The notes under the pieces were generated by a model. The model was given only the letters and a program-made list of their open reading frames with translations. It searched no databases and was not told where the DNA came from. From Macrostomum hystrix (Eukaryota > Animalia > Platyhelminthes): a DNA stretch of 64,000 bases. Positions 2,188 through 36,400 of this stretch are shown piece by piece; within the stretch, counting starts at the first letter, position 1; every line of letters starts with the position of its first letter. The translations under genes were made by a program, and so were the position numbers. Location of the stretch: NCBI GenBank assembly GCA_950097015.1, contig CATNEN010000038.1:11346001-11410000 (forward strand), read 5' to 3'.

Positions 2188-5100
2188 CTGACTTGGGCTC
2201 AGAATCAACCGGCTTCACCTGAATCGGGCGGGCCATCTGCGAAAAGAAAATTACAGGGTTCAAAAACTAGCCAGGGGATAAATTAGGTAGGACCAACGAA
2301 AATGGGAGGCAGGATTTTTCCCGTCTTTTGGTAATCAGAGAAGTAATTGCCGCCCATTTTATTTCTTCTATCTGTGAAATCCCCTTAACTATCTAGGATT
2401 GGGATACGGGTTTGTGGGCATCTGCAGCAGGGATCAGGGCTGACTTCCGGGGCGACACGGACACTCAAAGGGAGGAGATGCAGTCGCCCGCACCTGCTGC
2501 AATCTTCTGCAGTAGGGAGAAAACAAAACAGACTGTCATTGAATAAAAATATCCCTTATCTCCCCGACCCCCGTGGATCTGGTTTGTTAGAGGCGAAATG
2601 TTAGTGTAGTGGAGGATCAAGTGTTGAGTAGGAGGTGTCCGGCTCAGGAGTGTCAGGCGGGGTAGGGTCAGAGGTGTCAGGCAGGGTAGGGTCAGAGGTG
2701 TCAGGCAGGGTAGGGTCAGAGGTGTCAGGCAGGGTAGGGTCAGAGGTGTCAGGCAGGGTAGAGTCAGAGGTGTCAGGCAGGGTAGGGTCAGAGGTGTCAG
2801 GCAGGGTAGGGTCAGAGGTGTCAGGCAGGGTAGGGTCAGAGGTGTCAGGCAGGGTAGGGTCAGAGGTGTCAGGAAGTAACTGACTTACTCCAGGCAGGGT
2901 GCAGTGGTCATGCAGCAGTGACTGGCACCGTACAGCGCTATCCTTGTTCACGTAGGTCAGAAATGCGCAGCCTACAAAATTTCGTGCGGGTTGGGCAATT
3001 TTAGTCGAGGTGAAGGTGAGATTTTTTGGTACCTGCAGTCTCTATTGTTTTCTCTTTGACTGTCACACCGTCTTATCTGGCCAACACAATGTTACCCCAA
3101 TCTTCTACCTATCTAGCCAATCCTCTGCCTATCTACCCAATCTTCTGCCTATCTACCCAATCTTCTGCCTATCTACCCAATCTTCTGCCTATCTACCCAA
3201 TCTTCTGCCTATCTACCCAATCTTCTGCCTATCTACCCAATCTTTTACCTATCTACCAAATCCTCTGCCTATCTACCCAATCCTCTGCCTATCTACCCAA
3301 TCTTCTGCCTATCTACCCAATCTTCTACCTATCTACCCAATCTTTTACCTATCTACCAAATCCTCTGCCTATCTACCCAATCCTCTGCCTATCTACCCAA
3401 TCCTCTGCCTATCTACCCAATCTTCTACCTATCTATCAAATCCTCTGCCTATCTACCCAATCTTCTGCCTATCTTCCCAATCTTTTACCTATCTACCAAA
3501 TCCTCTACCTATCTACCAAATCCTCTACCTATCTACCCATTCTTCTACCTGTCTACCCAATCTTCTACCTATCTACTCAATCCTGTACCTATCTACCCAA
3601 TCTTCTACCTATCTACCCAATCTTCTACCTATCTACCCAATCTTTTACCTATCTACCTAATCTTCTGCCTGTCTACCCAATCCTCTGCCTATCTACCCAA
3701 TCCTCTGCCTGTCTACCCAATCCTCTGCCTATCTACCCAAGTCGTCTCTCCTGCTTCACTTGTATAATAACTCGCGCTCGGATTTCCAATTAAAAAGATA
3801 CAGTAGTTCCGAAATCGTGACAAGCCACAGAAATAACTATATCACAGAATTTATTTTCCTGTAGGTATATAAAATCGCCATCGAGTAGGGCAGGTGGTTC
3901 GAGGTCTATCCCCACACCGAAAACAAATTTGGGATCACAAGAATAAGGACGGACATGCGGGCAGCGGAGATTGGACTCTTAATTAATGAGCCCATCATGC
4001 CGATTCCCTTGCCCGCCGCGTGTTTGTGTGAAGGCTGAAGAAATGTTGACTGATTTAAAAAAATTGTAATTATCATTTCTGCCTTGCATCAGCGATTAGG
4101 AAACGACAAGAAGAGATTGGTTGGAAATAGGAAGTGAGCTCATGACCCACTCTCGGGCTAAGGTCTAGAAATAATTAAAAAAGCAACACGATCTAGTTCC
4201 TGACAAGCAAGCCTTTGCCGGTCCAATCACAGGAGTCCTTGGTCAATAGTGCCAATAGTTTTCGAATCCTGAAACCCGAATTGATTAAAGAATTAAATAT
4301 TTTAGACTCTTATCCCAAAAAATCCTCAATCCTATCGATAATATAATCAGTCGAGAGCTTATACCGTCGAACCGTAATCCCTCAGAACCCTAGGCCCCAT
4401 CAATCGCTAATCCCATTAATCACAAATCAATCCCTTATCCAAACGATCTATAATCCCTTCAATCCCTAATCCCACCAATCCCTAATCCCTTCAATCCCTA
4501 ATCCCACAAATCCCTAATCCCACAAATCCCTAATCCCTTCAATCCCTAATCCCACAAATCCCTAATCCCACAAATCCCTAATCCCTTCAATCCCTAATCC
4601 CACAAATCCCTAATCACATCAATCCCTAATCATATCAATCCCTAATCACATCAATCCCTAATCCCACCAATCCCTAATCCCTTCAACCCCTAATCCCACA
4701 AATCCCTAATCACATCAATCCCTAATCACATCAATCCCTAATCACATCAATCCCTAATCCCATTGATCCCTAATCCCATCACTCTCTAGTCCCATCAATC
4801 CCTAATCACATTAATCCCTAATCACATCAATTCCTAATGCCACAAATCCCTAATCCCATTGATCCCTAATCCAATTGATCCCTAATCCAATTGATCCCTA
4901 ATCCAATTGATCCATAATCCAATTGATCCCTAATCCAATTGATCCTAATCCCATCACTCTCTAGTACCATCAATCCCTAATCCCATTGATCCCTAATCCC
5001 ATTCTAATCCCATTGATCCCTAATCCCATCAATCCGTAATCCTACCGATTGATAATCCTCTAATAATCCTTGCCCACGTCGACCCCTAATCACATCGAAC

Positions 5101-7342: not shown

Positions 7343-7560
7343 AGAGTCTAGCTGCGTTTGGAAATGACGGGAAATGAAAATGACTCGTACAAATTGACAG
7401 ATTTCGAGAATCGGTTCTAGAATAATCCTCGGCTTGCTAGCGGGGGTTTGAGCAGGACTCAGACACAGGAGTTCCCTCTTAGCCGCTATTGGTTGGAATA
7501 GAGACAACCCTTTCAGGAAAGAGCTTTGGATTTTATTCATATTCTTAGCTGCTGGTTGGG

Positions 7561-8020
7561 AAGGGATTGTGAATGAATAGTGAAGGGATTGTGAATGAGC
7601 AGTTAAGGGATTGTGAATGAGCAGTGAAGGGATTGTGAATGAGCAGTGAAGGGATTGTGAATGAGCAGTGAAGGGATTGTGAATGAGCAGTGAAGGGATT
7701 GTGAATGAGCAGTGAAGGGATTGTGAATGAGCGGTGAAGGCATTGGGGTGGATAATGGATGGATTATGATTTAATAATGAATAGATTGTCCACCTGTGAA
7801 GAAGGGATTGTAATCGGATAAAGAAGGGATTGTAATCGGATAAAGAATGGATTGTGATTGGATAATGAAGGGATTGGGATTAGAAAATGAAGGGATTGTG
7901 ATTTGAAAATGAAGTGATTTTAATTGCTAATGAAGGATTTGTGATTGGATTATGAATGGATTGTGAGTGATAATGAAAGGATTGTGAATAAACAGTGAAG
8001 GGATTGTGAATGAACAGTGA
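7561..8020. repeat. 22-bp minisatellite (GAAGGGATTGTGAATGAGCAGT)n decaying into degenerate copies
   Basis: Directly visible. Confidence 0.88.
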
Positions 8021-13453: not shown

Positions 13454-16400
13454 TTCCTTCTGGGACTGCCGTTCAACTTGCTGGGCACCGATCTGTGAAT
13501 GCACATTACCAATCAAACCTGCTCTTTCATTGTTTCAGTTGTGATTCTGACCCTTTTTTTCTTCCCCGACTCTTTCTTTCTACCCCCTTGACTCTATCTT
13601 TCTCCCTCCGGACTCTTTCTTTCTTCCCCGACTCTTTCTTTCTACCACCTTGACTCCTTCTTTCTTCCCTGACTTTTTCTTTCTCCACCCTGACTCTTTC
13701 TTTCTCCCCCTTGACTCTTTCTTTTCCCCCCTTGACTCTTTCTTTCTCCCCCTTGACTCTTTCTTTCTCCTCCCTGACTCTTTCTTTCTCCCCCTTGACT
13801 CTTTTTTTCTTCTCCTGACTATCTTTCTCCCCCTTGACTCTTTTTTTCTTCTCCTGACTATCTTTCTCCCCCTTGACTCTTTTTTCTTCTCCTGACTATC
13901 TTTCTGCCCCTTGACTCTTTTTGTCCCCCCTTGACTCTTTCTTTCTCCCCCCCTGACTCTTTCTTTCTCCCCCCTGACTCTTTCTTTCTCCCCCTTGACT
14001 CTTTCCTTCTTCCCCTGACACTTTCTTTCTTCTCCTGACTATCTTTCTCCCCCTTGACTCTTTTTTTCTTCTCCTGACTATCTTTCTGCCCCTTGACTCT
14101 TTTTCCCCCTGACTCTTTATTTCTCCACCTGACTCTTTCTATCTCCCTCCTGGCTTTCTGCTCTCCAGACAGTTTCTTTCTACCTCGACTGTTTATTTCT
14201 ACCCCTGACTGTTTCTTTCTCCCTCCTGACTTTCATTCTTCTACCCAGACTTGCTGCTTGCCTGACTCTTTCTTTCTCATAGCACGTTGGCTAAGATCCA
14301 ATCCGGAGTCAGGGATCGAACCACTGACTCACCGCTTGTTGCCTAGCAGTGAGGGCAGTCTAGTTCGCTTGCCAGCCGCCGGCACTGGCGACACCTGGGC
14401 GGTCCTCGCCTTCGGCGCCGGCTCTTCGGATTCGGCCAGATCAGCGCCAAGCTCAACGACAGCTGGCGTCCGGGCACCGCTAACAGACGAAGCGTTTGTC
14501 GACTTTATCGACGAAGACTTGCTAGCGACAATGTCAAAGTTGTTACTTTTTGTTGAGCTTCCAGTTAGCAGCCGCGTATCCAGTCCTTCGCCGAAGGCGC
14601 TGCCGCCCCCGCCGCTGCAGATGCTGCATGCGGCCAATGCTGATTCCTGTTAGAAAATTGGCGCTAAATATACATTGTTTCTCAAATTAAATTTGAGATC
14701 TGGGATCGGGGATCTGGGATCGGAGATCTGGGATCGAAGATCTGGGATCGGGGATCTGGGATCGGGATCTGGAATCGGGGATCTGGGATCGGGGATCGGG
14801 GATCTGGGATCGGGGATCTGGGATCGGGGATCTGGGATCGGGGATCTGGGATCGGGGATCTGGGATCGGGGATCTGAGATCGGGGATCTGGGATCGGGGA
14901 TCTGGGATCGAGAATCTGGGATCGGGGATCTGGGATCGGGGATCTGGGATCGGGGATCTGGGATCGGGGATCTGGGATCGGAGATCTGGGATCGGGGATC
15001 TGAGATCGGGGATCTGGGATCGGGGATCTGGAATCGAGAATCTGGGATCGGGGATCTGGGATCGGAGATCTGGGATCGGAGATCTGGGATCGGGGATCTG
15101 GGATCGGGGATCTGGGATCGGGGGTCTGGGATCGGGATCTGGGATCGGGGATCTGGGATCGGGGTTCTGGGATCGGGGATCTGGGATCGGGGATCTGGGA
15201 TCGGGATCTGGGATCGGGGATCTGGGATCTGGGATCGGAGATCTGGGATCGGGGATCTGGGATCGGGGATCTGGGATCTGGGATCGGGATCTGGGATCGG
15301 GGTTCTGGGATCGGGGATCTGGGATCGGGATCTGGGATCGTGGATCTGGGATCTGGGATCGGGGATCTGAGATCGGGGATCTGGGATCGGGGATCTGGGA
15401 TCGAGAATCTGGGATCGGGGATCTGGGATCGGAGATCTGGGATCGGAGATCTGGGATCGGGGATCTGGGATCGGGGATCTGGGATCGGGGATCTGGGATC
15501 GGGATCTGGGATCGGGGATCTGGGATCGGGGATCTGGGATCGAGAATCTGGGATCGGGGATCTGGGATCGGAGATCTGGGATCGGGGATCTGGGATCGGG
15601 GATCTGGGATCGGAGATCTGGGATCGGGGATCTGAGATCGGGGATCTGGGATCGGGGATCTGGGATCGAGAATCTGGGATCGGGGATCTGGGATCGGAGA
15701 TCTGGGATCGGAGATCTGGGATCGGGGATCTGGGATCGGGGATCTGGGATCGGGGATCTGGGATCGGAGATCTGGGATCGGGGATCTGGGATCGGGGATC
15801 TGGGATCGGAGATCTGGGATCGGAGATCTGGGATCGGGATCTGAGATCGGGGATCTGGGATCGGGGATCTGGGATCGAGAATCTGGGATCGGGGATCTGG
15901 GATCGGAGATCTGGGATCGGAGATCTGGGATCGGGGATCTGGGATCGGGGATCTGGGATCGGGGGTCTGGGATCGGGATCTGGGATCGGGGATCTGGGAT
16001 CGGGGTTCTGGGATCGGGGATCTGGGATCAGGGATCTGGGATCGGGATCTGGGATCGGGGATCTGGGATCTGGGATCGGAGATCTGGGATCGGGGATCTG
16101 GGATCGGGGATCTGGGATCTGGGATCGGGATCTGGGATCGGAGTTCTGGGATCGGGGATCTGGGATCGGGATCTGGGATCGGGGATCTGGGATCTGGGAT
16201 CGGGGATCTGGGATCGGGGATCTGGGATCGGGGATCTGGGATCTGGGATCGGGATCTGGGATCGGGGTTCTGGGATCGGGGATCTGGGATCGGGATCTGG
16301 GATCGGGATCTGGGATCGGGATCTGGGATCGGGGATCTGGGATCTGGGATCGGAGATCTGGGATCGGGGATCTGGGATCGGGGATCTGGGATCTGGGATC

Positions 16401-19400
16401 GGGATCTGGGATCGGGGTTCTGGGATCGGGGATCTGGGATCGGGATCTGGGATCGGGGATCTGGGATCTGGGATCGGAGATCTGGGATCTCACCACATTG
16501 CTCACCACAAAGTACTCATCACGGTTGGTCACAGAGGACCTGATGATGTCTGTCACCAGCTGTCGTTCGCGAGGTGATGCGGCTACTAGCCAGGCTCGCA
16601 CAGCTGCCCGATCTTGAGTCTGCAGAATACGGCACAGCATGCTCATGACTGAGTCCTGCAGCAGCTCCAGTTTGCCGATAGCCTGCCCCCTGTTGCCCTT
16701 GTCGGCGACTGCCAGACGGCCAGTCAGGGGACTGTACAGACGCTGCAGCTGCCTCGCCTGTTGTGGATTGGCTTGCGGAAGCGAATGAATGAGGAAAATT
16801 CGAATTATGGATATAAACAAATGATCATTTATTAATTATCGAAATCATATTACAAGCAAAGAAATGAACTCTTATTAAAAACAAAATAAAACACTATTTG
16901 AAATCCCAATCCCATTTAATTTAGTGCCAACTAATATATCGTGCAGCTGTGACCGTTGCGATAGCTAGCTACGTAATTGTACTTTAGGTTCTACTTATTC
17001 TACTTAAATTATTAGTGCTTCAGTATATACGTACATATCGTTTTAACTGAAACTTTTCTAATGGGATTAAACAGTTCTTGTAAGTAATTTAGAGACAACT
17101 AAACTGAGTAATGAATAACAAATTATAAAACGCAGGAATACGCTGTTAAGATTTTTTTGAGAAACTAATTTTTTTATTTAAGTAGTATCAAAACACATTT
17201 ATTTCTTAAAAATGAAACACACGGACGACACGATAGTAGAAGACTCAAATTAGTTCCAAAACAGCATTGGATAATGATTTAATAAATTTAAATCCGGAAG
17301 CATTTTCAAGCTGATAGCTGGATGCAGTACTGCTGTACTACATGTCACCAGTATTGTGCTTGCTTTCCATTGCACTCTAATAGCCATCGTTATCTGGCTT
17401 GTCCGAATCATCGTACGGCTTGGGATTGGGATTGTAACCAGGCTTGTTGTAGGTGTCGTCGTACGGCTTAGGATTGGGATTGTAGCCAAGCTTGTTGTAG
17501 GTGTCGTCGTCCGGCTTAGGATTGGGATTGTAGCCAGGCTTGTTGTAGGTGTCGTCGTACGGCTTGGGATTGGGATTGTAACCAGGCTTGTTGTAGGTGT
17601 CGTCGTACGGCTTGGGATTGGGATTGTAGCCAGGCTTGTTGTAGGTGTCGTCGTACGGCTTGGGATTGGGATTGTTGCCAGGCTTGTTGTAGGTGTCGTC
17701 GTACGGCTTGGGATTGGGATTGTAACCAGGCTTGTTGTTGTTGTCGTCGTACGGCTTGGGATTGGGATTGTAGCCAGGCTTGTTGTAGGTGTCGTCGTAC
17801 GGCTTGGGATTGGGATTGTAACCAGGCTTGTTGTTGTTGTCGTCGTACGGCTTGGGATTGGGATTGTAGCCAAGCTTGTTGTAGGTGTCATCGTCCGGCT
17901 TAGGATTGGGATTGTAACCAGGCTTGTTGTAGGTGTCGTCGTACGGCTTAGGATTGGGATTGTAGCCTGCAGGCTTGTTGTAGGTGTCGTCGTACGGCTT
18001 GGGATTGGGATTGTAACCAGGCTTGTTGTTGTTGTCGTCGTACGGCTTGGGATTGGGATTGTAGCCAGGCTTGTTGTAGGTGTCGTCGTACGGCTTGGGA
18101 TTGGGATTGTAACCAGGCTTGTTGTTGTTGTCGTCGTACGGCTTGGGATTGGGATTGTAGCCAAGCTTGTTGTAGGTGTCATCGTCCGGCTTAGGATTGG
18201 GATTGTAACCAGGCTTGTTGTAGGTGTCGTCGTACGGCTTGGGATTGGGATTGTAACCAGGCTTGTTGTAGGTGTCGTCGTACGGCTTAGGATTGGGATT
18301 GTTGCCAGGCTTGTTGTAGGTGTCGTCGTACGGCTTGGGATTGGGATTGTAGCCAGGCTTGTTGTAGGTGTCGTCGTACGGCTTGGGATTGGGATTGTAA
18401 CCAGGCTTGTTGTAGGTGTCGTCGTACGGCTTGGGATTGGGATTGTAACCAGGCTTGTTGTAGGTGTCGTCGTACGGCTTGGGATTGGGATTGTAACCAG
18501 GCTTGTTGTAGGTGTCGTCGTACGGCTTGGGATTGGTATTGTAGCCAGGCTTGTTGTAGGTGTCTTCGTCCGGCTTAGGATTGGGATTGTAACCAGGCTT
18601 GTTGTAGGTGTCGTCGTACGGCTTAGGATTGGGATTGTAACCAGGCTTGTAGTTATTGTCGTCGTTCGGCTTAGGATTGGGATTGTAACCAGGCTTGTAG
18701 TTATTGTCGTCGTTCGGCTTAGGATCGGGATTGTAACCAGGCTTGTAGTTATTGTCGTCGTTCGGCTTAGGATCGGGATTGTAACCAGGCTTGTAGTTAT
18801 TGTCGTCGTTCGGCTTAGGATCGGGATTGTAACCAGGCTTGTAGTTATTGTCGTCGTTCGGCTTAGGATCGGGATTGTAACCAGGCTTGTAGTTATTGTC
18901 GTCGTCATATGATCTGGGATTGTAGCCGGGTTTGTTGTTCGAATCATCATAGTCGACTGGTGGAGCAGGTGTCAGCGTGGCCCACAATGCCACTGACAGC
19001 AGAATGCTTAGGCGCATTGTTTTCATTAATTTCAGACTTTTAAAACAAGGCAGTAGAAATAAATAACTTTCAATTGGTGTCCTCTCTTGTAGTTCTGTTG
19101 AAGTCAGTTATTTATAACCCTACAGGACCCCAATACTTATCCCCCCTCTAAACCCTCCACCAAGGCGTTATCAGTTGACTTGTGTGCGCCTTCTCGGGAC
19201 TGAAGTGTGAAGTGTTAGTTCGGAGGAGGTTGAGGTGCGACGTTGGGCAGAGGGTTGAGAATCAGCCAATCAGATCGCTCTAAGAAAAAACGCTTATATT
19301 GTTTCAACATGGACCAGTTTGAACAAGAACTTGTTTTTTTACTAACATCATGACCCACTATGCGCACTTAAATGTCAAACAGCACAGTCTGTGATCCTCT

Positions 19401-20871
19401 TGCTTTTAGACTAACAAAATAACAAATAAGTAAGCCCTTGATGCACTTTTATTGGACACAAAAGCTATTTTCACTGGACACTGTTTCAAACGAGTGGAAA
19501 ATCACTTTAAATTTTTTTCTACTTTAACTATTTGTCCGTGACCGTAAGCTTAAATTCAATCATGAGATACTCGTATCAGTAATACTTTGCTCCATCTTGT
19601 ATGGTTTTATAATACATTAGTTTCTTTAGAATTTAAGATTAAAGATCAAATCCAAACTGCAAACCATTATCTACTCACCTGCACTAGTCTGATTCGGATG
19701 CTCCGATGACGTGACGCCGTCTCGCACAATGAAAGTCTCCCTGACGAGATTGGACAGAGCCGCTCGCCACGCAGCATCGCCAGCGCCTGACCCTGACTGA
19801 GCCTCAGCCTGAAGTCTAGCAAACTGCTCTAGATGCTGCGGCTTGGTCAAGCCGCGTAGTGACGAACCCGGATTAGCGGCCGCGGCAAGAAGCTGCTCAG
19901 GCCGAGCAGTCGGATAGCAACTGCATGGCGGTTTTTTGTATAGAATAGAGTTAGTTTAAAAATTGGAATTTTTCTTTATGGTAATCCCATGAAAGCCGAA
20001 ACAGCAATCACAGCCACAGGGACACCCTAGCACTTATGACAATCCCATCCCAAAGAAAACCCAAATAAACAGGAACAGTCTGTTGCAATTACAATTACAT
20101 AGTGCAGTCTATGGCAATCTCATAATGGACACAGAGAAACAGTCCATGGCAATTCCACGGACTCAGTAACAGCCTATGGCAAATTGGGCAAAGAGTAACA
20201 GTCTATGGCAATCCCATGGGCAAAGAGTAACAGTCTATGGCAATCCCATGGGCAAAGAGTAACAGTCCATGGCAATCCCATGGGCAAAGAGTAACAGTCT
20301 ATGGCCATCCAATGAACACAGAGTAAAAATCTATGGCAATCCGATGCATGGATACAGTGAAATCTATGGCGATCCCATGCATGGACACAGTCAAACCAAT
20401 GGCAATCCCATGCATGGGCACAGTCAAACCAATGGCAATCCCATGCATGGACACAGTCAAACCAATGGCAATCCCATGCATGGACACAGTCAAACCAATG
20501 GCAATCCCATGCATGGACACAGTCAAACCAATGGCAATCCCATGCATGGACACAGTCAAACCAATGGCAATCCCATGCATGGACACAGTCAAACCAATGG
20601 CAATCCCATGCATGGACACAGTCAAACCAATGGCAATCCCATGGTCGCAGGAAGTCCAGTCTCACATATGAAAATCCAGTGGCATGCCGCTGTCCACCAC
20701 ACTGGGCACTTGGCAGCCCTGCAAGGCACAGATGTGAACGCATCGGTGCGGATGCGGATTGTGCCTAGTGATGACAGCGTGGGCTTTGAAGACGGCGGGT
20801 TCTATTGACTGTTCAGGCCTTCCAACTGTCGCTGTTGTCGATGCTCGACTTCTGGACTCAGACTGCTTCAT
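13454..20871 (-). CDS. TBATA: TBATA/SPATIAL-like protein (thymus, brain and testis associated family); last exon not resolved
   Basis: Exons 20871-20666, 19920-19679, 16771-16494, 14646-14333 and 13492-13454 splice in phase (2, 1, 0, 2, 2). Motifs ITRHNPHPHRCVHI, AWRAALSNL, LYSPLTGRL and MLCRILQTQDRAAVRAWLVAASPRERQLV resemble, from memory, TBATA blocks FSRHHPHPQHVTHI, YSxETGRL and LLCQILQTDSLSAIQFWLLYAPPKEK. Confidence 0.75.
13545..14280. repeat. Pyrimidine-rich ~21-bp minisatellite (TGACTCTTTCTTTCTCCCCCT)n
   Basis: Directly visible, degenerate. Confidence 0.9.
14694..16490. repeat. (GGGATCTGGGATCGG)n array filling almost all of TBATA intron 14647-16493
   Basis: Directly visible; begins immediately after the GTGAG donor. 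Confidence 0.97.
17173..17203 (-). terminator. Two candidate polyadenylation signals (AATAAA) for the nested gene
   Basis: TTTATT on the + strand at 17173-17178 and 17198-17203, about 175-200 nt past the stop codon. Confidence 0.55.
17377..19026 (-). CDS. Secreted Tyr/Pro/Asn/Lys/Asp-rich tandem-repeat protein (16-aa unit KPGYNPNPKPYDDTYN), intronless, nested in a TBATA intron
   Basis: ATG followed by a signal-peptide-like stretch (MRLSILLSVALWATLTPA); ~32 units of 48 bp; unique N- and C-termini; the only indel seen is a 3-nt insertion (KPAGY); upstream TATAAATA and downstream AATAAA. Confidence 0.85.
   Translation of the reverse strand: MKTMRLSILLSVALWATLTPAPPVDYDDSNNKPGYNPRSYDDDNNYKPGYNPDPKPNDDNNYKPGYNPDPKPNDDNNYKPGYNPDPKPNDDNNYKPGYNPDPKPNDDNNYKPGYNPNPKPNDDNNYKPGYNPNPKPYDDTYNKPGYNPNPKPDEDTYNKPGYNTNPKPYDDTYNKPGYNPNPKPYDDTYNKPGYNPNPKPYDDTYNKPGYNPNPKPYDDTYNKPGYNPNPKPYDDTYNKPGNNPNPKPYDDTYNKPGYNPNPKPYDDTYNKPGYNPNPKPDDDTYNKLGYNPNPKPYDDNNNKPGYNPNPKPYDDTYNKPGYNPNPKPYDDNNNKPGYNPNPKPYDDTYNKPAGYNPNPKPYDDTYNKPGYNPNPKPDDDTYNKLGYNPNPKPYDDNNNKPGYNPNPKPYDDTYNKPGYNPNPKPYDDNNNKPGYNPNPKPYDDTYNKPGNNPNPKPYDDTYNKPGYNPNPKPYDDTYNKPGYNPNPKPYDDTYNKPGYNPNPKPDDDTYNKLGYNPNPKPYDDTYNKPGYNPNPKPYDDSDKPDNDGY
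19109..19116 (-). promoter_or_regulatory. TATA box of the nested repeat-protein gene
   Basis: TATAAATA about 85 nt upstream of the ATG; CCAAT box (AGCCAATCAG) near 19264-19273. Confidence 0.6.
20195..20645. repeat. 30/33-bp minisatellite (ATGGCAATCCCATGCATGGACACAGTCAAACCA)n in a TBATA intron
   Basis: Directly visible. Confidence 0.94.
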
Positions 20872-21748
20872 TGCTGCAGATAGAATTCTTTAAACTACGA
20901 GTATATTCTGCTCGAGCACAGCTCAAAATAAGTAATATTGTTGTCCAATTTATGTGCTCTAGACTAGTAATGATGAAGCAACGTGAAAAACAGAAGCACC
21001 GGTTCGGCAGACAGACAGACAAGCTCGATGGCTGACATCAAACAATGGTAGATTTTGCACAGAATATAAATGGTTTTTTGAATGTGGCAGATCTGGTTAG
21101 ACAGAGCCAGTGCGATAAACTCCTCCGGTCCTTGTAAAATTCTCATTAAAACTGAGATTTGTGAGTTATTATTGTAAAAGCTTTTGAGCATAAAAACTGC
21201 TCTCTTCTGTCGCTTGTGTTTTTTCATCGAAGCAGAATTTGGTACTTGGGCACTAAAAAAAGTGCGAGACCTTAACGGCGCCTGGTAAACAAGCCCCTCC
21301 CCACACCACTTATAGAGGCGAAATTTTTCGTCCACTTTAGGAAGCTGAATACGTCATTGAACAGTCATAATGAATGTCATTCTAGAGGTCATTGGGTCAT
21401 TTTGTTATAGGCCTTATTTAATAAATTTAACTTTTATTCTACCGCTGACACGCTGACACCGAAGTTGTTGCAGGTGGAAATTAACTATCCCACCGCTGCC
21501 ACCAAAGTTGTACCAGGGCTTTACTTAACAACTGGCTTTTATAAGAAAATCCCACCGCTGTTATCAAAGTTGTGGTAGGCGTGCTTTCTTTTTTTTTTAC
21601 TTAAATTCTACTGAATGCCACCAAGGTTGTACTGGGGCTATTTTAATAATTTCACTGCTGTTGACTCCTTAAAAGATATTTTTAAATGGCGGTCCTTAAA
21701 TGGGCCGTTTTAGCTTCTCAAATGGTAGCGTTTATATATGCACGAGCG

Positions 21749-22622: not shown

Positions 22623-23621
22623 TTTAAAAGCTTATAAAACGTCAGTAAAGAGACTATTGAGCGGTCATCGAACAGGTCGTTTAGCATCGACGTGTAGTCA
22701 TTGCGGAGATCATTTAACATTTCGTAGCAAGCACACGAAACGCAAGAACACGGGGCCAACTTTTTGTTGCGCATCTTCTGAAACAAGAAATCAAGTCGCC
22801 AGCCCTTCAGATCGTCGAGGTATTCAACGGTTCTGGCCGAAGGTCGGATTTTTCCCTTAAGAGCTAGTGCGTATTTGACACAATCCTATGCACAAACTTG
22901 CACTGTGCCTCAGTGCGGCCTTGCCAGGCCTTCAAACTTTATCAGCATGTCAGTCGAAATGTGCCTGCATCATCTCCGACCTCGGTGGTCACCGACCTTT
23001 ATCTAGATATAAAAAGGGCCGGCAAAATGGGTTGGTAGTGCATCTGTTAATAATCATTGTAGAGGTATTAATTGAGCTATCATTTTGGCGGTCGTTAAGC
23101 AGGTTCGATTGGGACGTACATCATAAAAAATTAAATGACATCATTGCGCAGGTCCTTAAAGACTCATAAATCAGTAAATTGATATAATTTAAATTTGAGC
23201 TTTTGAGCAATAGTCGAATAGTTGATTGAGTAGCCATTGCACGAGATCAGGCCACTGATCAGTCATGATCTGAGTCATTGTAAAAGCAAAATTATAGAAG
23301 TTAAAGGAACAATAAAAGCAAATATCGCAGCCAACCCTAGCCAAAGCCACCGACTTGAGTCCAGTCTGTCCAGCCTTAAACAACATGCCATTTTTTGAGT
23401 ACAGTCCACATAGACGATTGTCTATAGTTGCAAACTGAAAATATTGATTCCCTAAATTTCAAATCAACTCCACACAATTGAATGTACGAATAAAATAAAT
23501 AAACTAGTACCAGTTTGAATCACCAAATGCTCGAGAAAGTATTCTTAAACGACGCCTTAACTTTTGTTAAGCTTTACTTCAATTGCTTAAACAAGCACTC
23601 GAAGCGAAGTGTAGGTGAAAG

Positions 23622-26600
23622 ATGTCAGAGCAGAATAATCAAGAGCCACAAGATGCTCTTGAAGCCGGCAGCCTTCATCAGCGAGCTGCCTCTCTGTTTA
23701 ACCTTCTCGACCCTCAGGGCACCGGCTTCGTGAACATCGACGACCTACGAGCTATTGCAGCCGAGTCAACAGATGACGAGCAGCAGCAGGCGACGGAGGA
23801 AATCTTCAGAAGGTTTGACACCAATGGAGATGGTCGAATCAATTTGGCTGACTTCCAAATAGCCCTCACGGCCATCAGCTGTAGGGCGGCGGAGGCGGCG
23901 GACATCGGCCAAGACTTAGGTCACGAAGTGCCAATCATTGACGGCGCCGAGGAACTCGAGTGTCACGACGAGGTTCAGCAGATGCAACGTCTGTTAGCGC
24001 AGAATTATCCACAGCTGGCTGAGTCATTCCAGGTGTGTCTCACTGCCAGCATTCAGTCTAATTCAGTTCACAAACTTCGAATCCTACAGAAGCCACTGCT
24101 ATACCAGCCTTATTGCCCCTTTGTAGGGCGTCATTGCAACGGTTGCTACGGAGCTCGCTATTCAGCGTCGCGAGCATCAGGAGCTCGAGACCAGCTATCG
24201 CCGCAGTCGGGACCTGGCCAATCAGCGCGCCCGCCAGCTGCAGGAGGAGATGGAGCGGCAGCTGTCTGGATTCGAAAGGCAGGCTCGGCTGGCGGAGCGA
24301 CAACGACTGGAAGCTGAGTTTCACCAGCTGGCAAACAGGCAGCAGGATGAAATTTCCAGGCTGCAGGTGCGTTTCTGGTTGTGTTTCTGGTTGTGTTTCA
24401 CGAAAATCGGTCATTCCGTTTGGGAGCTATCGTGAAGTAGACAGTAGGTATTTGGAATATCCCCCACCAGGAGAGGAAACAGCGTAGCGAAATAGCGAAA
24501 TCAGTTCTGCTGTAAAACCTTCATGACGCTCGAGACCCTGAGCTCGATTCCGCGGCGAGGCCACACTCATATGGGGCGCAGCCGTGCCCGCGGAGTAAGG
24601 CTTGGGGCTTGTCGTGCAATTTATGCTATTGAGAGCCATTGAGAACAATGTGGCATTGCCCTCAGCACTCCTGTAATTATTCTTATTATTAGTACGCGGG
24701 GTTTTTGAAATCTTCCAGACCTTTGCGATCTTAGGGTCATAGTCTATTTTCCTAGGCTCGGATGTCCGAACTGCGCCGGCATCGCGACTCTGCTGCCGCG
24801 TCGTCCTCGTTGGCTTCTTCGACGGCAGCCGCGGCGGCCCAGGAGGCGGCAGCGGCGGCCAAGTCAGACGCCGACAGGCTGGTTCGAGAGACGCAGCAGC
24901 TGGAAGCGGAGCTGGCTGCCTGCCAGGCCAAGTTGTCGCGCGCTAGAAATCGGGGCGACGCTGGTGAATTAGCATTGAAATCGCAGCGACGTCAGGTGGC
25001 CGAGGAGACCGAACGTCGTCAGGAACTTGATGGCCGTCTGGCGGAGATGCGGCTGGCAAATCTGCGGCTTCGGCAGGCTAACGAGGACCTCCGTAGGGCG
25101 TTGTTCAACGGTGGCCGTCTGCAGCGTCGAATTCGCCGGCATCGGCTTCGAGAGGCCTCTGGAATGTCTGCCTCGTCGATGCTGCGAAAGTCGACGACCT
25201 CCGCTGACATTCCGGCCGCGTTTGGGGGCTGCGAGTTTCGAGACAGCGAGGACTCGGAGTGGGAAGCCGAGACTGGGTGAGTCAACTGAGATGGAATATT
25301 GTGGCAATCCGGATGCTGCAAAAGACACTCAAGGCACAGCCGACTAGTGTTCGAAACTGATAACGTCATGAGCCATGTCTTCCGCATCATTTCCCTCCAA
25401 ATCCAGAGCATCGACCACCACCGCCCGCCTGTCTTCCGCATGGCGCCTTGACGCCAACGAGCAGACGCTGCCTTTGTCATCGCCATCAGAAGACTCCACG
25501 ACCATCGCGTCCTCTGATGAAGCGGATGAAATTGACGATGAAGGCGACACAGACTTGGACGAGTTTAGCGCAGATGAGGATGTCGGCGTGCCCTTGGCTG
25601 ACGAACTTGCAGCAGCTGCGCCGCCCCCTGCTCCGCCGTCGCGCTATCGCCGACGTCGAAGAGCTCGAACGTCGAGACGTCGCCGTCTTCCCTGGCTCGC
25701 CTCATCGGGCGTGGTTGAAGCCGATTTCGATTTCGCGGACGTCGCTGATCAACAGCCGGAGCGCCTATTCAAGATTGTGACCGCGGGCGACGCGGCAGTC
25801 GGCAAAAGTAGCTTCGTCGGCTGCTTCTGCGACGGCCGCTGCCCGCAGTCGACTGTTGCCACAGTCGGCATCGACTTCAGGACGCGTACCCTGGCTGTCG
25901 ACGGTCGGGTGGTGGCAATCCAGCTGTGGGATACCGCCGGGCAGGTGAGTCTGAGTCCTCTGTATAGAAACAGCCTTTCTGTTGTACTAATACTCACCGA
26001 GTCAATATTCTCCTCCCATCCGCAGGAGCGGTTCCGCAGTCTGGCCAGGTCGTACTTTCGTCGCGCTGACGGCGCCCTGCTGATCTACGATTGTACCGAC
26101 GAGGCCAGCTTCGTTGGTGTCCGAGACTGGCTGCTGGCCATCAGGGAGAGCTCGGGCTGCGAGATTCCTGTGCTGCTGCTGGCTAACAAGGTATTCTGAT
26201 CCCATAATATCCTGATCTCATAACACACTGTCCTGATCCCATAATACCCTGATCCAACGAGCAATCAATCAGATGTACACACCTGTGTGAGTGTATGCCT
26301 GCCTATATTATCTGCGTGCGCATGCGCTCAGGAGTCAGCGGAACGGGCAGCATTGCTTCACGCCGGCTGCAGGTCAAGTGTCACTAAATATTAGCCAATG
26401 CCCGCAGCCCACCTGCAATCATAATAATAATTGTAACTATAATAAATATGTTTTTATTATCCCGATCCGCAACACACTATCCTGATCCCGTAAATACTGA
26501 TCCCAAAACATCCGATCCATATCCCCTAAACACTTTTTCCACTGCCGTCTGGAAAATATGATTATCATTAACTTGAATTTCAATCCCAGATCGACGCCCG

Positions 26601-29258: not shown

Positions 29259-29928
29259 AATTAGTCTACACACAGGCAGCCAATCTATATATATAAAAGT
29301 GAAAACTCTGTCTGTCTGTCTGTCTGTCTGTCTGTGTGCAACCTTTTGTCTTTATAGACGCCGAAACCGCTCAACCAAATCGCACCAAACTTTGCACATA
29401 CCTAAAACCACCTACGCTGAGTGCAATAGGCTACTCAAATTCCCGAAAAATCATTTCCTTCCTGCTCAAAAGTGCAAAAAACTGCTCAAAAATCGTCAAA
29501 AAATCACTCAATTCGACATATCGTCGCCCCACTTTGTCAGATTTTCTCCAAATTTGATCCACTTACACTTTACATGTTTTCCAACAATGCTGTCAATTTT
29601 GAACATCTCTACTCAATCCAGAGCAAAGCTGCATCATCTCAAAGTGAGTCACTTTTTGTTTTTCGAGGACAGCCACCCCAACTCCCCTCCGCCACTCTGC
29701 GGGCCAAATTTTATTACAGCCACCCCCTCCCTTCCCCGGGCGCCGAAGCCCCAGACTGTACATTGTATTTCAAGCCGTGAATGTACACAGCCCAAACCCC
29801 TAGACTGTCTACTGGCCCCCAAGCAGCACTGAGACTGAGTGCGGTGAGTGCGGTGGCGTCCCAGTGCGCAGGGCTCTCCGGTCGATATTTCTCTCCAGCC
29901 AGCCTGGAAGAGAGAGGCTGGCGTTTAC

Positions 29929-30531
29929 TGGCTGTCAGAGAGGGCAATTCTGTGTCCTAGAAATGATGCCGCCAACTACCAACTGCTTCAGGAGTTGCCA
30001 GGTGCAGTTTTCACCTACAAGTCAATTGATACAACGTTGACTGATGACACCGCTGTGGAGTATCCTGTTGAGTTTCTGAACTCTCTAGATCCTCCTGGAA
30101 CTCCATCGCACAACTTGCAGCTGAAAGTTGGGGCACCAATTATGCTCCTCCGCAACCTGAATGCGCCAAGGCTGTGTAACGGCACCAGACTGATAGTCAG
30201 GCGGCTCTTCCCACACGTGATTGAGGCCACGATAAAGACTGGATCTGGCAGAGGAGAGTCTGTGTTCGTTCCCCGGATTCCAATTATCCCCACGGACCTG
30301 CCATTTCAGTTCAAGCGACTGCAGTTCCCTGTGAGAGTGTGCTTTGCGATGACTATTAACAAGGCTCAGGGACAGTCGCTGAAGGTGGCTGGCATCAACC
30401 TGGAGACTCCTTGCTTCTCGCATGGGCAGCTTTATGTCGCCTGCTCCCGTGTTGGAACTCCAGCTGGCCTATTCATTTTCGCACCAAGGGGAAGAACGAA
30501 GAATGTGGTGTATCCCCAGGCCTTGAGGTGA
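29929..30531 (+). pseudogene. C-terminal fragment of the Helitron Rep/Pif1-family helicase
   Basis: Motifs LKVGAPIMLLRNL, LCNGTRL, RLQFPVRVCFAMTINKAQGQS, FSHGQLYVACSRV and KNVVY; the Rep domain and Walker A motif are missing. Confidence 0.9.
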
Positions 30532-33231: not shown

Positions 33232-33479
33232 CAGGTCTCGCAAAGGCGTGTGTGTGCGCTGATTCTAGTTTTAAGATGTTTGGTTCTCATGAGCAAGTGA
33301 ACCCATATTGATTTTTGTTTGTAAACGTACTACTTACAGTTTTAACATTGTCATAGCTCATGGTTGTAGGCTACAAATCTCACATTTCTCATGCTTTTTC
33401 AGTACTCTTCGCGGATTTCAAGCATTTCAAAAAGGCTGACCAGAAATTTTATCTGCTTTTTCTCTTCGACAAGAAGAAA

Positions 33480-36400
33480 ATGCTACAGCAGCTGCTAACA
33501 CTACTCTGTACTTTGCACTGGTCCCTTCTGTTCTTCTCAATGTCGACTGCAACTCCAGCGCTGGGTCCTCCTGAAGTGAGCGCTCGAGCATCAGCCGACG
33601 CTGTGTCGGACATTCTGGACAACCTTCTGCTCAGCTACGACAAGGCCATGCGGCCGATTCAGCACGATGACGAGGCTGGTAACTTGTCGGCACCGCTAAG
33701 CGTTCAAATCAGCATCAACATTCGCAGCATGGGTCCCATATCAGACAAGGACATGACCCTGTCCATGGACTGCTACTTTCGTCAGCTCTGGCGAGACAGC
33801 CGGTTGAATTTCAGCGAGAACAGCACCGGCTTTGCCAGCTTCCAGCTTAACGAGAAATTCTTGCACGAAATCTGGAGACCGGACACCTACTTCATGAATG
33901 GCCGAGCATCCTACCTGCACAACCTCACCTCACCCAATGTGCTCATCAGGATTCGGAGCCGAGGGGAGATTCTCTACTCAATGCGACTCACAATTAAGGT
34001 AAATTGGTGAATGGTGAATGGGATCTCAAGATGTCATGATCTCAAGATTGTGGGATTATCTGTAAATCTGGGATCTGGGAAAATTGGAGAACGGGAGAAA
34101 TAAGGAATGTGAGAATGGAAGACTGGGAGAATGGGACTATGGGAGATGGGAGAATGGGAAAATGGAAGAATGGGAGAATCGGAGGATGGGAGAATGGGAG
34201 AATCGGAGAATGGGAGAATCGGAGAATCGGAGAATGGGAGAATGGGAGAATGGGAGAATGGGAGAATGGGAAATTGAAGAATGGGAGAATCGGAGGATGG
34301 GAGAAAGGGAGAATCGGAGAATCGGAGAATCGGAGAATCAGAGAATGGTAGAATCGCAGAAAGGGAGAACGGGAGAATGGAAGAATGGGAGAATGGGGAA
34401 ATCAGTTAATTCGTTCCTCCTCTGCCTCCTCAATTATTGATTGGTCAATGGTCTCTCAATATTGTGGGATAACTTGTGAATGTGTTGTCAAGATTTGGGA
34501 TTTTCGAAGAATTGCATGTCAGGGTTGTGTGGATTTTTCTATCAATTGGATGATAAGGTTTTGGGTTGCTTGTATTATGTCAATTAGACATTTTTAATCT
34601 ACAAATTTGGCAGTTAAAATTAATATTACAAGTGGTTTTATGGTTAATATTTCGGTTTTGTACGACGGTAATTTGTAGGCACAATAATTTGATTTTAATT
34701 ATTAGAACAACACAAGAACGAAAAATCGATTAATGAAAAATACATGCATTAGCCGAGACAACTAGTAAGTTAAAAGCTTTTTAGGTAAATCCTCTTTTGC
34801 TCCAAAAATTGCACGAGTATAAGCCTGCTACTCTGCGTCATCCGCTTCGGGAAATTAATATGCAGCTTATCTGTTTAAAGGTTACCGGACATGCCTGGGA
34901 TTGCCCCGAACCGAAGGAACCGAAGAACAGATGCGACTGGGAGAATAGGAGGTTGGGAGGGTGGGAGAATATAAAAGAGGCAGAACGGAAGGAATTGCAG
35001 GGGCCGAATAAAATAATGCGAGAATGCAAGAATGGGAGCATGGAAGAATGGGAAAATGGAAGAATATGAAAATGGGAGAGAGGGGAAATTATATATTGGG
35101 AGAATGGAATAAAGGGAGAATGGGAGAATGGGAGAATGGGAGAATGGGAGAGAGGGAAAATGGAATAATGGGAGAATGGAAGAATGGGAAAATGAGAAAA
35201 GTGAGAATGGGAGAAAGGGAGAATATAATAATGGGGTGAATCAGAGAATTGGAGAATGGGAGAACGTGAGAATGGGAGAATGGAAGAATGGGAAAATTGG
35301 AAAATGGAAGAATGGGAGAATGGGAAAAGGGGAGAATGGGAGAATAGAAAAATGGGAGAATTGGAGAATGGGAAAATGGGAGAATTGGAGAATGGGAGAA
35401 TCTGAGAATGGGAGAGAGGGAAAATGGGAGAATGGGATAATGGAAGAATGGGAAAATGGGAAAAGGGGAGAATTGGAGAACGTGAGAATGGGAGAATGGA
35501 AGAATGGGAAAATTGGAAAATGGAAGAATGGGAGAATGGGAAAAGGGGAGAATGGGAGAATAGAAAAATGGGAGAATTGGAGAATGGGAAAATGGGAGAA
35601 TTGGAGAATGGGAGAATCTGAGAATGGGAGAGAGGGAAAATGGGAGAATGGGATAATGGAAGAATGGGAAAATGGGAAAAGTGAGAATGGGAGAAAGGGA
35701 AAATATAATAATGGGGTGAATCAGAGAATTGGAGAATGGGAAAAGGGGAGAATTGGAGAATGGGAGAATGGGAGAATCTGAGAATGGGAGAGAGGGAAAA
35801 TGGAATAATGGGAAAATGGGAAAAGTGAGAATGGGAGAAAGGGAGAATATAATAATGGGGTGAATCAGAGAATTGGAGAATGGGAGAATGGGAGAATGGC
35901 ATCAATAAAAAAGGTGTCAGGTTAAAGTTGCGCGGTTGCCATCTCGCACAGGCGCACTGTCCCATGGACTTTCATCGCTACCCAATGGACACGCAGCACT
36001 GCCCGCTGCACATTGCTAGCCACGGCTACGGTCTCAGCGACTTGTCCTACAGCTGGCGCTACGCCCAGCACTCAATTGAGACGGCGGCCAACCTGCAGAT
36101 GTCCCAGTTCGACCTGGTCAAGGTGTCAACCGGCGGCACTGTTCGAGCCATCGGCAAACTCGGAAATTTCTCCGTGCTCAGTGTCAGTTTTGTGCTAAAA
36201 CGGCACGTGGGATATTTTCTCATACAGCTCTACCTGCCCTGCGCACTGCTAGTGGTGCTGTCTTGGTGAGTCTGTGCTGCGGGAGAGGTGGGAGGGGGAA
36301 GACAGTGGGAAGAGAAGGGGAGAATACGAAGGGGATGAAGAGGAGAGGATAAGAGGGATGGCGAAGTGAAGGGGAGAAGAGGAGGGAAGAAGAGAAGGGG

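Follow-up and report, generated by a model that had tools for sequence, protein, structure and literature searches.

The stretch of DNA analysed here, a window of 64,000 nucleotides from the flatworm Macrostomum hystrix, contains an open reading frame for a repetitive protein within an intron of a second gene, both on the minus strand. The host is a SPATIAL/TBATA-like gene, and the repeat gene is nested in it on the same strand. The host exon at 16491..16771, bounded by a splice junction at 16771, encodes the C-terminal part of SPATIAL (PF15256) and passed the Pfam cut-off of 27 with 39.8 bits (E 8.3e-10). The exon at 20666..20889, with a junction at 20666, gave a weak N-terminal match to the same family that stayed under the cut-off (E 0.002, 19 bits). 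Between them lies a host exon of 242 nt (19679..19920) whose minus-strand borders read AG|..|GTGAGT. Spliced contigs have a loose end at 19679 that maps to 16742-16771 and another at 19920 that maps to 20666-20695, which delimits an intron at 16772..19678. The repeat gene is located wholly within this intron, as had been proposed before any transcript data were considered.

The coding sequence (17377..19026, minus strand) consists of one exon and encodes 549 amino acids followed by a TAG stop codon. After a leader, the reading frame is made up of 32 units of about 16 amino acids each with the consensus KPGYNPNPKPYDDTYN. Exactly 48 nt were counted in 29 of these units, one carries an in-frame GCA insertion (KPAGY), the first is shortened, and the last is divergent. 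Tandem Repeats Finder (TRF) and the listing of units place the 48-bp array encoding these 16-amino acid units at 17411..18905 on the minus strand, with a period of 48, 31.1 copies, 94% matches, and 0% indels. Units 1-6 of the array read KPGYNP(D/N)PKPNDDNNY, later units mostly follow KPGYNPNPKPYDDTYN, and an internal duplication spans five to six units. The original prediction of a 48-bp array with about 32 units, no cysteine, and a frame-preserving KPAGY indel was thus confirmed by the open reading frame, TRF, and the unit listing.

Proline (23%), asparagine (21%), tyrosine (15%), aspartate (14%), and lysine (12%) dominate the 549-amino acid protein, which includes 82 tyrosines, 65 lysines, 78 aspartates, and no cysteine. 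Each unit contributes two lysines, two to three aspartates, and one to three tyrosines (mostly three), and a proline follows every two to four residues. The calculated pI is 4.7-4.8, with a net charge of about -14 at pH 7. With a GRAVY of -2.3, the mature chain (about 61 kDa) is strongly hydrophilic; it includes no N-glycosylation sequon. The residue after each tyrosine is Asn, Asp, Lys, or the stop codon, and Tyr-Gly was found for 0 of the 82 tyrosines. AlphaFold2, run on the single sequence, returned a mean pLDDT of 37.8 without secondary structure, and the mature chain is predicted to be disordered. Differences between units comprised about four synonymous and nine replacement kinds of change as counted by eye, and no clear enrichment at synonymous sites was found in this within-array comparison, which is underpowered.

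The first 22 amino acids (18961..19026, minus strand) form a signal-peptide-like leader, as indicated by a hydrophobicity scan and analysis by hand. Its n-region reads MKTMR, its h-region LSILLSVALWATL, and its c-region TPAPP, and hydrophobicity peaks at 2.68 in a nine-residue window. The putative cleavage site is likely to follow Ala16 or Ala21. Both the n-h-c layout and the hydrophobicity peak agree with the signal-peptide-like N-terminus that had been noticed at the outset.

Two public sequencing runs (X4 and X5) yielded contigs that were placed over the 5' half of the gene region. These runs behave as RNA, because their cover is confined to exon-shaped pieces whose loose ends are spliced, and the 570 nt at 19104-19673 have none. 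One X5 contig of 206 nt matches 18881-19086 exactly, and one X4 contig of 179 nt is free of mismatches over 18887-19065. In X5, the contig at the 5' end of the gene has a depth of 32 vs 14.5 for the host exon, and pieces of the array reach depths in the hundreds in these runs. When scaled to the host exon, depth in X4 and X5 differs four- to eightfold, which hints at regulated expression. Three variant letters in the placed contigs were considered as alleles and rejected; they come from misplaced reads of paralogous units. Three further runs under other organism labels (X1-X3) hold only array fragments of 35-78 nt identical to the window, the longest of which are collapsed repeat-unit loops, and the unique 5' end has no cover in them.

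The contig edge at 19086 defines a putative 5' UTR of 60 nt (19027..19086, minus strand; X5 and X4 contig cover) without an upstream ATG. A TATA box, TATAAATA, is located at 19109..19116 on the minus strand, 30 nt upstream of this edge. Two putative AATAAA poly(A) signals (17203-17198 and 17178-17173, together 17173..17203, minus strand) lie 175-200 nt past the stop codon. Hence both the gene's own TATA box and the AATAAA signals 3' of the stop codon, as claimed originally, are in place. The independent transcript proposed to start at about 19085 was borne out in part: the contig edge at 19086 and the bare sequence upstream agree with it, whereas the contigs are unstranded and cover the 5' half. 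Taken together, these features suggest a genuine gene with a start of its own.

Tandem repeats make up 47% of the window, and 19 ATG-started open reading frames of at least 150 amino acids occur in it, mostly inside minisatellites. The array is open in three of its six frames (two of the three sense frames and one antisense). An open reading frame alone is weak evidence in such a repeat-rich window with 19 long open reading frames and other open array frames. A signal-peptide-type non-repeat leader is, in turn, absent from all the other long open reading frames among the 19. In the published genome assembly of M. hystrix (42 contigs, 220,453,370 bases), the unit of the repeat and the unique 5' and 3' ends were found at this locus only, and all genome matches to the unit (30 of 30) fell inside the array. 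An annotation and Iso-Seq data for M. hystrix have been published (Wiberg et al. 2023, PMC10468722), and the gene corresponds to about 11,363,100-11,365,100 of contig 38. Possible paralogues were also considered: 107 protein matches in the M. hystrix genome turned out to be other minisatellites read as Pro/Asn/Lys-rich strings and were rejected, because they have no leader, consist of different units, and contain many stop codons. The array is therefore set apart by its non-repeat leader, its RNA-like cover, and a unit and ends that occur at a single locus.

Homologue searches gave no relative. No Pfam family was found in the 549-amino acid protein at E values up to 1, and word-indexed searches of 5.8 billion proteins with the whole protein and with residues 1-62 were blank. 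A phmmer search against 1.84 billion representatives returned low-complexity look-alikes only (best 84 bits, 25% identity), neither the ESM Atlas nor the PDB sequences included a true relative, and the exact 549-amino acid sequence is absent from a collection of 15 billion proteins. Judged by its sequence, the repeat protein is an orphan with no detectable relative. The view that it had been undescribed holds for Pfam, the protein libraries, the PDB, and the ESM Atlas, in none of which a characterised relative was found.

The best explanation, to which we assign a probability of roughly two thirds (0.68), is a real M. hystrix gene that encodes a disordered repeat protein destined for secretion. 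This single-exon gene would be transcribed on its own from near 19086, about 30 nt past the TATA box, and the first ATG (19026) would open the 549-amino acid protein. A cleavable signal peptide would then direct the product into the secretory pathway, and the repeat would evolve in minisatellite fashion. We infer transcription from the minus strand, translation, and secretion.

It is unlikely that the locus is instead a transcribed minisatellite that makes no protein, i.e., a non-coding RNA, possibly a plus-strand antisense transcript ending at 19086, with the open reading frame and leader having arisen by chance. The many long ATG-started frames in the minisatellites of the window, the three open array frames, and the lack of any homologue or annotated protein in the collections searched are in line with this explanation. 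An antisense RNA would also fit the edge at 19086, because the contigs carry no strand information and the plus strand includes both an AATAAA (19058-19063) that precedes the contig end by 23 nt and a TATAAAA (17124-17130). However, neither contig shows a poly(A) run or a loose end at 19086, and the minus-strand TATA box is exactly 30 nt from that contig end. The leader, moreover, has an n-h-c layout, is in frame, and stands at the first ATG of a minus-strand RNA, whereas the open plus-strand frame of the array has no ATG to start it and yields a meaningless hydrophobic V/I/G/R sequence.

As to the role of a secreted repeat protein, it is possible, although tentative, that it serves as a bulk secreted gland or egg-envelope material, coming from shell or cement glands or from shell granules of the oocyte, that is made insoluble via its tyrosines and lysines. 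Such insolubilisation might proceed by tyrosinase, with DOPA-quinone reacting with lysine, or by peroxidase, yielding dityrosine. The M. hystrix genome contains at least three tyrosinase loci, and oxidative tyrosine chemistry is thus possible.

A narrower proposal, that the protein is a DOPA-based adhesive or cement like mussel Mfp-1, sticking via DOPA and lysine side chains, is very unlikely. Like Mfp-1 with its AKPSYPPTYK decapeptides, the M. hystrix protein is of a secreted type, free of cysteine, and composed of many short Tyr/Lys/Pro tandem repeats in an extended disordered chain. The tyrosinase genes would suit this proposal as well, and so would the X-Pro-Gly (KPG) in the units, X-Pro-Gly being the classic context for prolyl hydroxylase. 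Mfp-1, however, is strongly basic with a pI of about 10, whereas the M. hystrix chain is acidic (pI 4.7, 78 Asp vs 65 Lys), with 21% Asn, 14% Asp, and a unit of 16 residues. No sequence similarity was found in any search, phmmer included, and the temporary glue is already accounted for by two other proteins. These are ap1 and ap2, with which Macrostomum species, M. hystrix among them, form their temporary glue and whose knock-down abolishes attachment; RNAi is effective in M. hystrix (PMC8621496). They are 5,407 and 14,794 amino acids long, contain EGF, C-type lectin, vWD, TIL, C8, LDL, and TSP-1 domains, and have repeats that are either Lys/Arg-rich or 221-255 amino acids long (PMC8621496). 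The repeat protein resembles them in being a secreted-type Macrostomum protein with large repetitive low-complexity regions, but is 549 amino acids long, acidic, without a Pfam domain, and built of 16-amino acid units. That ap1 and ap2 account for the temporary glue (PMC8621496) counts against a function as glue protein, one of the roles first suggested.

Eggshell precursors of trematodes are a second system for comparison. These secreted flatworm proteins are Tyr-rich, with tyrosines that are oxidised by tyrosinase and cross-linked to lysine and that often have a glycine on their carboxy side (PMC2758302). With 15% Tyr and 12% Lys, the M. hystrix protein resembles P14, P19 (vitelline protein B), and P48, which are Tyr-rich with lysine. 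It differs from them in being rich in Pro and Asn and not in Gly, as well as in having none of its 82 tyrosines followed by Gly, and no homology to the three was detected by phmmer (1.84 billion representatives) or by the word-indexed searches. The acidic pI and the absent Tyr-Gly context are unlike known DOPA proteins and speak against the cross-linking guess. Of the DOPA-type likeness in the original prediction, the secreted-type, cysteine-free Tyr/Lys/Pro repeats remain, whereas the acidic pI of 4.7 and the Tyr-Gly count of zero count against it.

Two further likenesses concern motifs or mode of action. The circumsporozoite protein of Plasmodium contains NANP/NPDP repeats, and Asn-Pro repeats favour turns and disorder. 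Repeated Asn-Pro dipeptides (NPNP, NPDP) are common to it and the M. hystrix protein, a likeness at the level of the motif to an unrelated protein that gave no search match. The Pro-rich cell-wall proteins of plants (PPVYK-type) and extensins are secreted Pro/Tyr/Lys repeat proteins that become insoluble via oxidative tyrosine cross-links and are heavily hydroxylated and glycosylated. They might be used as a working model, although they belong to another kingdom, have other repeats, and show no homology.

The NPNP core of the unit corresponds to a doubled hexamer AATCCC, and a GGGAT(T) core recurs in adjacent non-coding arrays. A quite unlikely scenario is that an intronic minisatellite gave rise to the gene, which now supplies a lineage-specific, oxidatively hardened Tyr/Lys material for egg envelope or cement. 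If true, an archoophoran flatworm, in which oocytes produce their own yolk and shell granules, would possess a precursor of shell or cement with no relation to the three families of trematodes, and this would suggest that new secreted proteins regularly arise from minisatellites in M. hystrix. No protein description of the eggshell, cement glands, or releasing glands of Macrostomum was found in the literature searched. Provided that the protein is made, it would be an unannotated, species-restricted secreted material in a flatworm model for adhesion and reproduction. With two lysines, two to three aspartates, and up to three tyrosines per unit and neither cysteine nor glycosylation sites, it would be a simple candidate for studies on condensation and oxidative cross-linking. 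That a 48-bp minisatellite can form the body of an expressed gene also bears on the annotation of this and other minisatellite-rich genomes.

It is extremely improbable that the SPATIAL/TBATA-like host uses the array as an alternative last exon, with exon 19679-19920 spliced to 18913, as the one X4 contig that joins 19679 to 18913 (CT..AC on the plus strand, i.e., GT..AG on the minus strand) has a depth of 3 and a shorter side of 27 nt and was flagged as weak, whereas the main splice of this exon goes to 16771 in both runs, greater depth is found over the unique 5' end that the isoform would skip (18914-19086), and the conserved SPATIAL C-terminus would be dropped. In favour of it, translation across the junction takes the host frame into the array's second open frame. 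The cryptic splice acceptor (cccag|A) used by this single low-depth contig is located within the coding sequence at 18913..18918 on the minus strand. The second open sense frame consists of TTTPTTSLVTIPIPSR units, stays open to 17250, and would give the host a Thr/Pro-rich tail.

The repeat gene lies within an intron of another gene on the same strand. Two public sequencing runs (X4 and X5), both from one 2020 study, contained about 30% of the words that were sampled, ahead of three weaker runs (X1-X3); contigs of the runs were aligned over 18420-20100. X4 and X5 behave as RNA, since an exon block at 19679-19920 is covered by contigs that continue to distant sequence and its flanks are bare. 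These contigs extend past both edges of the block into 16742-16771 and 20666-20695. They define three exons of a minus-strand host gene, one ending at 20666, one spanning 19679-19920 and one starting at 16771, so that intron 16772-19678 encloses the whole repeat gene, as had been proposed. An exon-by-exon search related the host to the Pfam family SPATIAL (TBATA family), with the C-terminal part above the cut-off (E 8e-10) and the N-terminal part below it (E 0.002). The exon with the SPATIAL C-terminus (14682-16820, minus strand) stays open for about 600 codons further into an adjacent 7/14-bp array, which encodes SQIPDPR-type repeats. A 1385-nt X5 contig runs 757 nt beyond the 16771 junction and, provided that contig and genome are colinear, would reach this array.

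From ATG to TAG, the nested open reading frame (17377-19026, minus strand) encodes 549 amino acids, beginning with MKTMRLSILLSVALWATLTPAPP. Analysed by hand, the leader has a short basic segment, which gives way to 13 hydrophobic residues (highest Kyte-Doolittle mean over 9 residues, 2.68) and then to an end rich in Pro and Ala. Cleavable signal peptides are built in this order, and the putative signal peptide is followed by eight further residues and 32 tandem units. Unit 1 is shortened, the next five read KPGYNP(D/N)PKPNDDNNY, and the majority of the others are KPGYNPNPKPYDDTYN with few single-residue variants (Y/N/D, P/L, P/T and TY/NN); one unit carries an in-frame GCA insertion giving KPAGY, and the chain ends in SDKPDNDGY. 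The original prediction had described an ATG, a signal-type N-terminus, some 32 units, a frame-preserving indel and a Cys-free chain, all of which were recovered. Its two Lys per unit also stand, and its two to three Tyr have to be widened to one to three, mostly three. Each unit further holds two or three adjoining Asp, and Pro recurs at intervals of a few residues. The composition is dominated by P (23%), N (21%), Y (15%), D (14%) and K (12%), with neither Cys nor an N-X-S/T sequon in the 549 residues. The predicted mature chain has a computed mass of about 61 kDa, a pI of 4.7, a net charge of about -14 and a GRAVY of -2.3. AlphaFold2 with single-sequence input returned a mean pLDDT of 37.8 and zero secondary structure, which fits a disordered chain, a single-sequence model being weak evidence.

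The open reading frame alone is no more than chance expectation. About 47% of the window (1-64000) consists of tandem repeats with 7-60-bp periods, and its 19 ATG-started open reading frames of at least 150 amino acids lie mostly within such repeats, so that in this genome a long frame by itself says little for the presence of a gene. The array itself (17411-18905; 48 bp, 31.1 copies, 94% matches and 0% indels by TRF) has two open sense frames and one open antisense frame. Unit comparison found a block of five to six units present twice, which indicates growth in minisatellite fashion. What sets this array apart is its leader, its single-locus sequence and its sharp-edged RNA-like cover. Of the 19 long frames, only that of the nested gene begins with unique, non-repetitive sequence shaped like a signal peptide, and the array had indeed been singled out. 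The M. hystrix assembly comprises 220,453,370 bases in 42 contigs (PMC10468722), the window being positions 11,346,001-11,410,000 of contig 38; in this 220-Mb genome, the 5' and 3' ends of the nested gene each occur at a single locus, and all 30 matches of the repeat unit fall inside the array. A protein search of the genome for paralogues gave 107 matches, and those inspected were unrelated minisatellites yielding Pro/Asn/Lys-rich strings.

RNA-like cover of the nested gene stops at a defined point. In X5 a contig of 206 nt is identical to 18881-19086, and in X4 one of 179 nt corresponds to 18887-19065; neither run covers 19104-19673 or 19959-20100, and array pieces reach a depth of several hundred. 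A minus-strand TATA box, TATAAATA (19116-19109), has its first T 30 nt upstream of the point where the X5 contig stops (19086), and no extra ATG occurs in the 60 nt between that point and the start codon. Two AATAAA signals follow the stop codon (17203-17198 and 17178-17173). These promoter and polyadenylation motifs had been noted before, and the RNA-like cover supports the separate transcript that had been postulated. The contigs lack strand information, and a non-coding or antisense RNA, transcribed from the plus strand and ending at 19086, would look alike; a plus-strand AATAAA lies at 19058-19063, 23 nt before that position, and a plus-strand TATAAAA at 17124-17130. Against this, no poly(A) run or loose end marks 19086 in the two contigs, the minus-strand TATA box sits at the exact spacing, the first ATG of a minus-strand RNA opens a complete signal-type leader, and the plus-strand frame lacks an ATG start and is implausible as a protein, which makes this alternative unlikely. 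We infer minus-strand transcription, translation and secretion of the nested gene. The depth of its unique 5' piece was 32 vs 14.5 for the host exon in X5 and 7.2 vs 13.2 in X4, contig depth being a poor measure; this is no more than a hint that nested gene and host are under separate regulation.

A single X4 contig (depth 3, shorter side 27 nt) splices 19679 to 18913, at an acceptor (cccag|A) within the nested coding sequence, and would lead the host frame into the second, Thr/Pro/Ser/Ile-rich open frame of the array, which has units TTTPTTSLVTIPIPSR and runs without a stop to 17250; a host-array fusion is highly improbable as an account of the array, and the junction is read as splicing noise, at most a minor isoform.

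No run showed an indel over 18420-20100. Three variant letters in the run alignment were considered as alleles and rejected, as they match variants of other array units (GGT/GGC, CCT/CTT and GAA/GAT). X1-X3 (2024, two other organism labels) contain array fragments of 35-78 nt that agree fully with the window at 18451-18528 and 18823-18900, of which the longest are repeat units collapsed into loops, and leave the unique 5' end and the host exon uncovered. These runs could be DNA at low coverage from this species or a very close relative.

Searches for relatives of the protein came back blank or with low-complexity look-alikes only, and the homology check thus brought up no characterised protein. 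Pfam gave no family at E up to 1, and neither the ESM Atlas, PDB sequences, an exact-sequence look-up nor a word-indexed search of 5.8 billion proteins (whole protein and residues 1-62) gave a real match. The best phmmer match among 1.84 billion representatives had 84 bits at 25% identity and is no real relative, matches of higher identity being unrelated short repeats only. Reproduction-related genes in Macrostomum evolve fast, often without detectable cross-species homologues (PMC7336406), with which the orphan status is consistent.

Like mussel foot protein 1, the product is a secreted-type, Cys-free Tyr/Lys/Pro repeat, but it has neither the basic charge of that protein nor any common sequence. 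With the trematode eggshell precursors P14, P19 and P48 it has in common a flatworm origin, an abundance of Tyr and Lys as a partner. In those families Gly often directly follows Tyr (PMC2758302); Tyr-Gly never occurs here, and no similarity was found. The Macrostomum adhesion proteins ap1 and ap2 are both far larger and packed with known domains, and their knock-down already abolishes adhesion in M. hystrix (PMC8621496). Circumsporozoite repeats resemble NPNP/NPDP at the motif level only. The product is filed as a taxon-restricted secreted tandem-repeat protein outside every named family. Of the original interpretation, the gene, its secretion signal, its intronic site and its separate transcript hold up; the DOPA or eggshell function is a hypothesis, and some features of the product speak against the mussel model.

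The mature chain would be a regular polyampholyte, which frequent Pro should hold extended. Such proteins are typically kept in secretory granules and then discharged in bulk to the outside of the cell. For a chain with 82 Tyr and 65 Lys, oxidative cross-linking would be the obvious hardening route, and the genome has at least three loci with tyrosinase-domain genes. A cross-linked structural material is the candidate role, with a probability of roughly one in four. Judged from residue context, Tyr adjoining Asp-Asp might be sulfated and Pro at K-P-G hydroxylated; an acidic partner or competitor of the Lys/Arg-rich glue protein ap1 is another possible role.

The array shares a GGGAT(T)/(A)ATCCC core with neighbouring non-coding arrays, and doubling the GGGATT/AATCCC hexamer gives the protein's NPNP core. 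Among the 34 arrays of the window (for example 1-1065, 4396-5042, 7560-8014, 14697-16490, 17411-18905 and 20333-20643), GGGAT is found in the units of nine and GGGATT in those of five, against means of 2.4 (maximum 6) and 0.6 (maximum 3) in 300 shuffles. This suggests that minisatellites may repeatedly turn into bodies of secreted proteins in M. hystrix.

Elsewhere in the window, neighbouring plus-strand open reading frames at 23619-26196 encode an EF-hand pair (E 5e-13), coiled-coil-like sequence and a Ras/Rab GTPase domain (E 4e-28), and look like a large EF-hand Rab GTPase gene. By eye, 29848-30528 (plus strand) resembles the C-terminal part of a PIF1/Helitron-type helicase, and pieces at 33357-38357 (plus strand) resemble a Cys-loop ligand-gated ion channel with minisatellite-filled introns between them.
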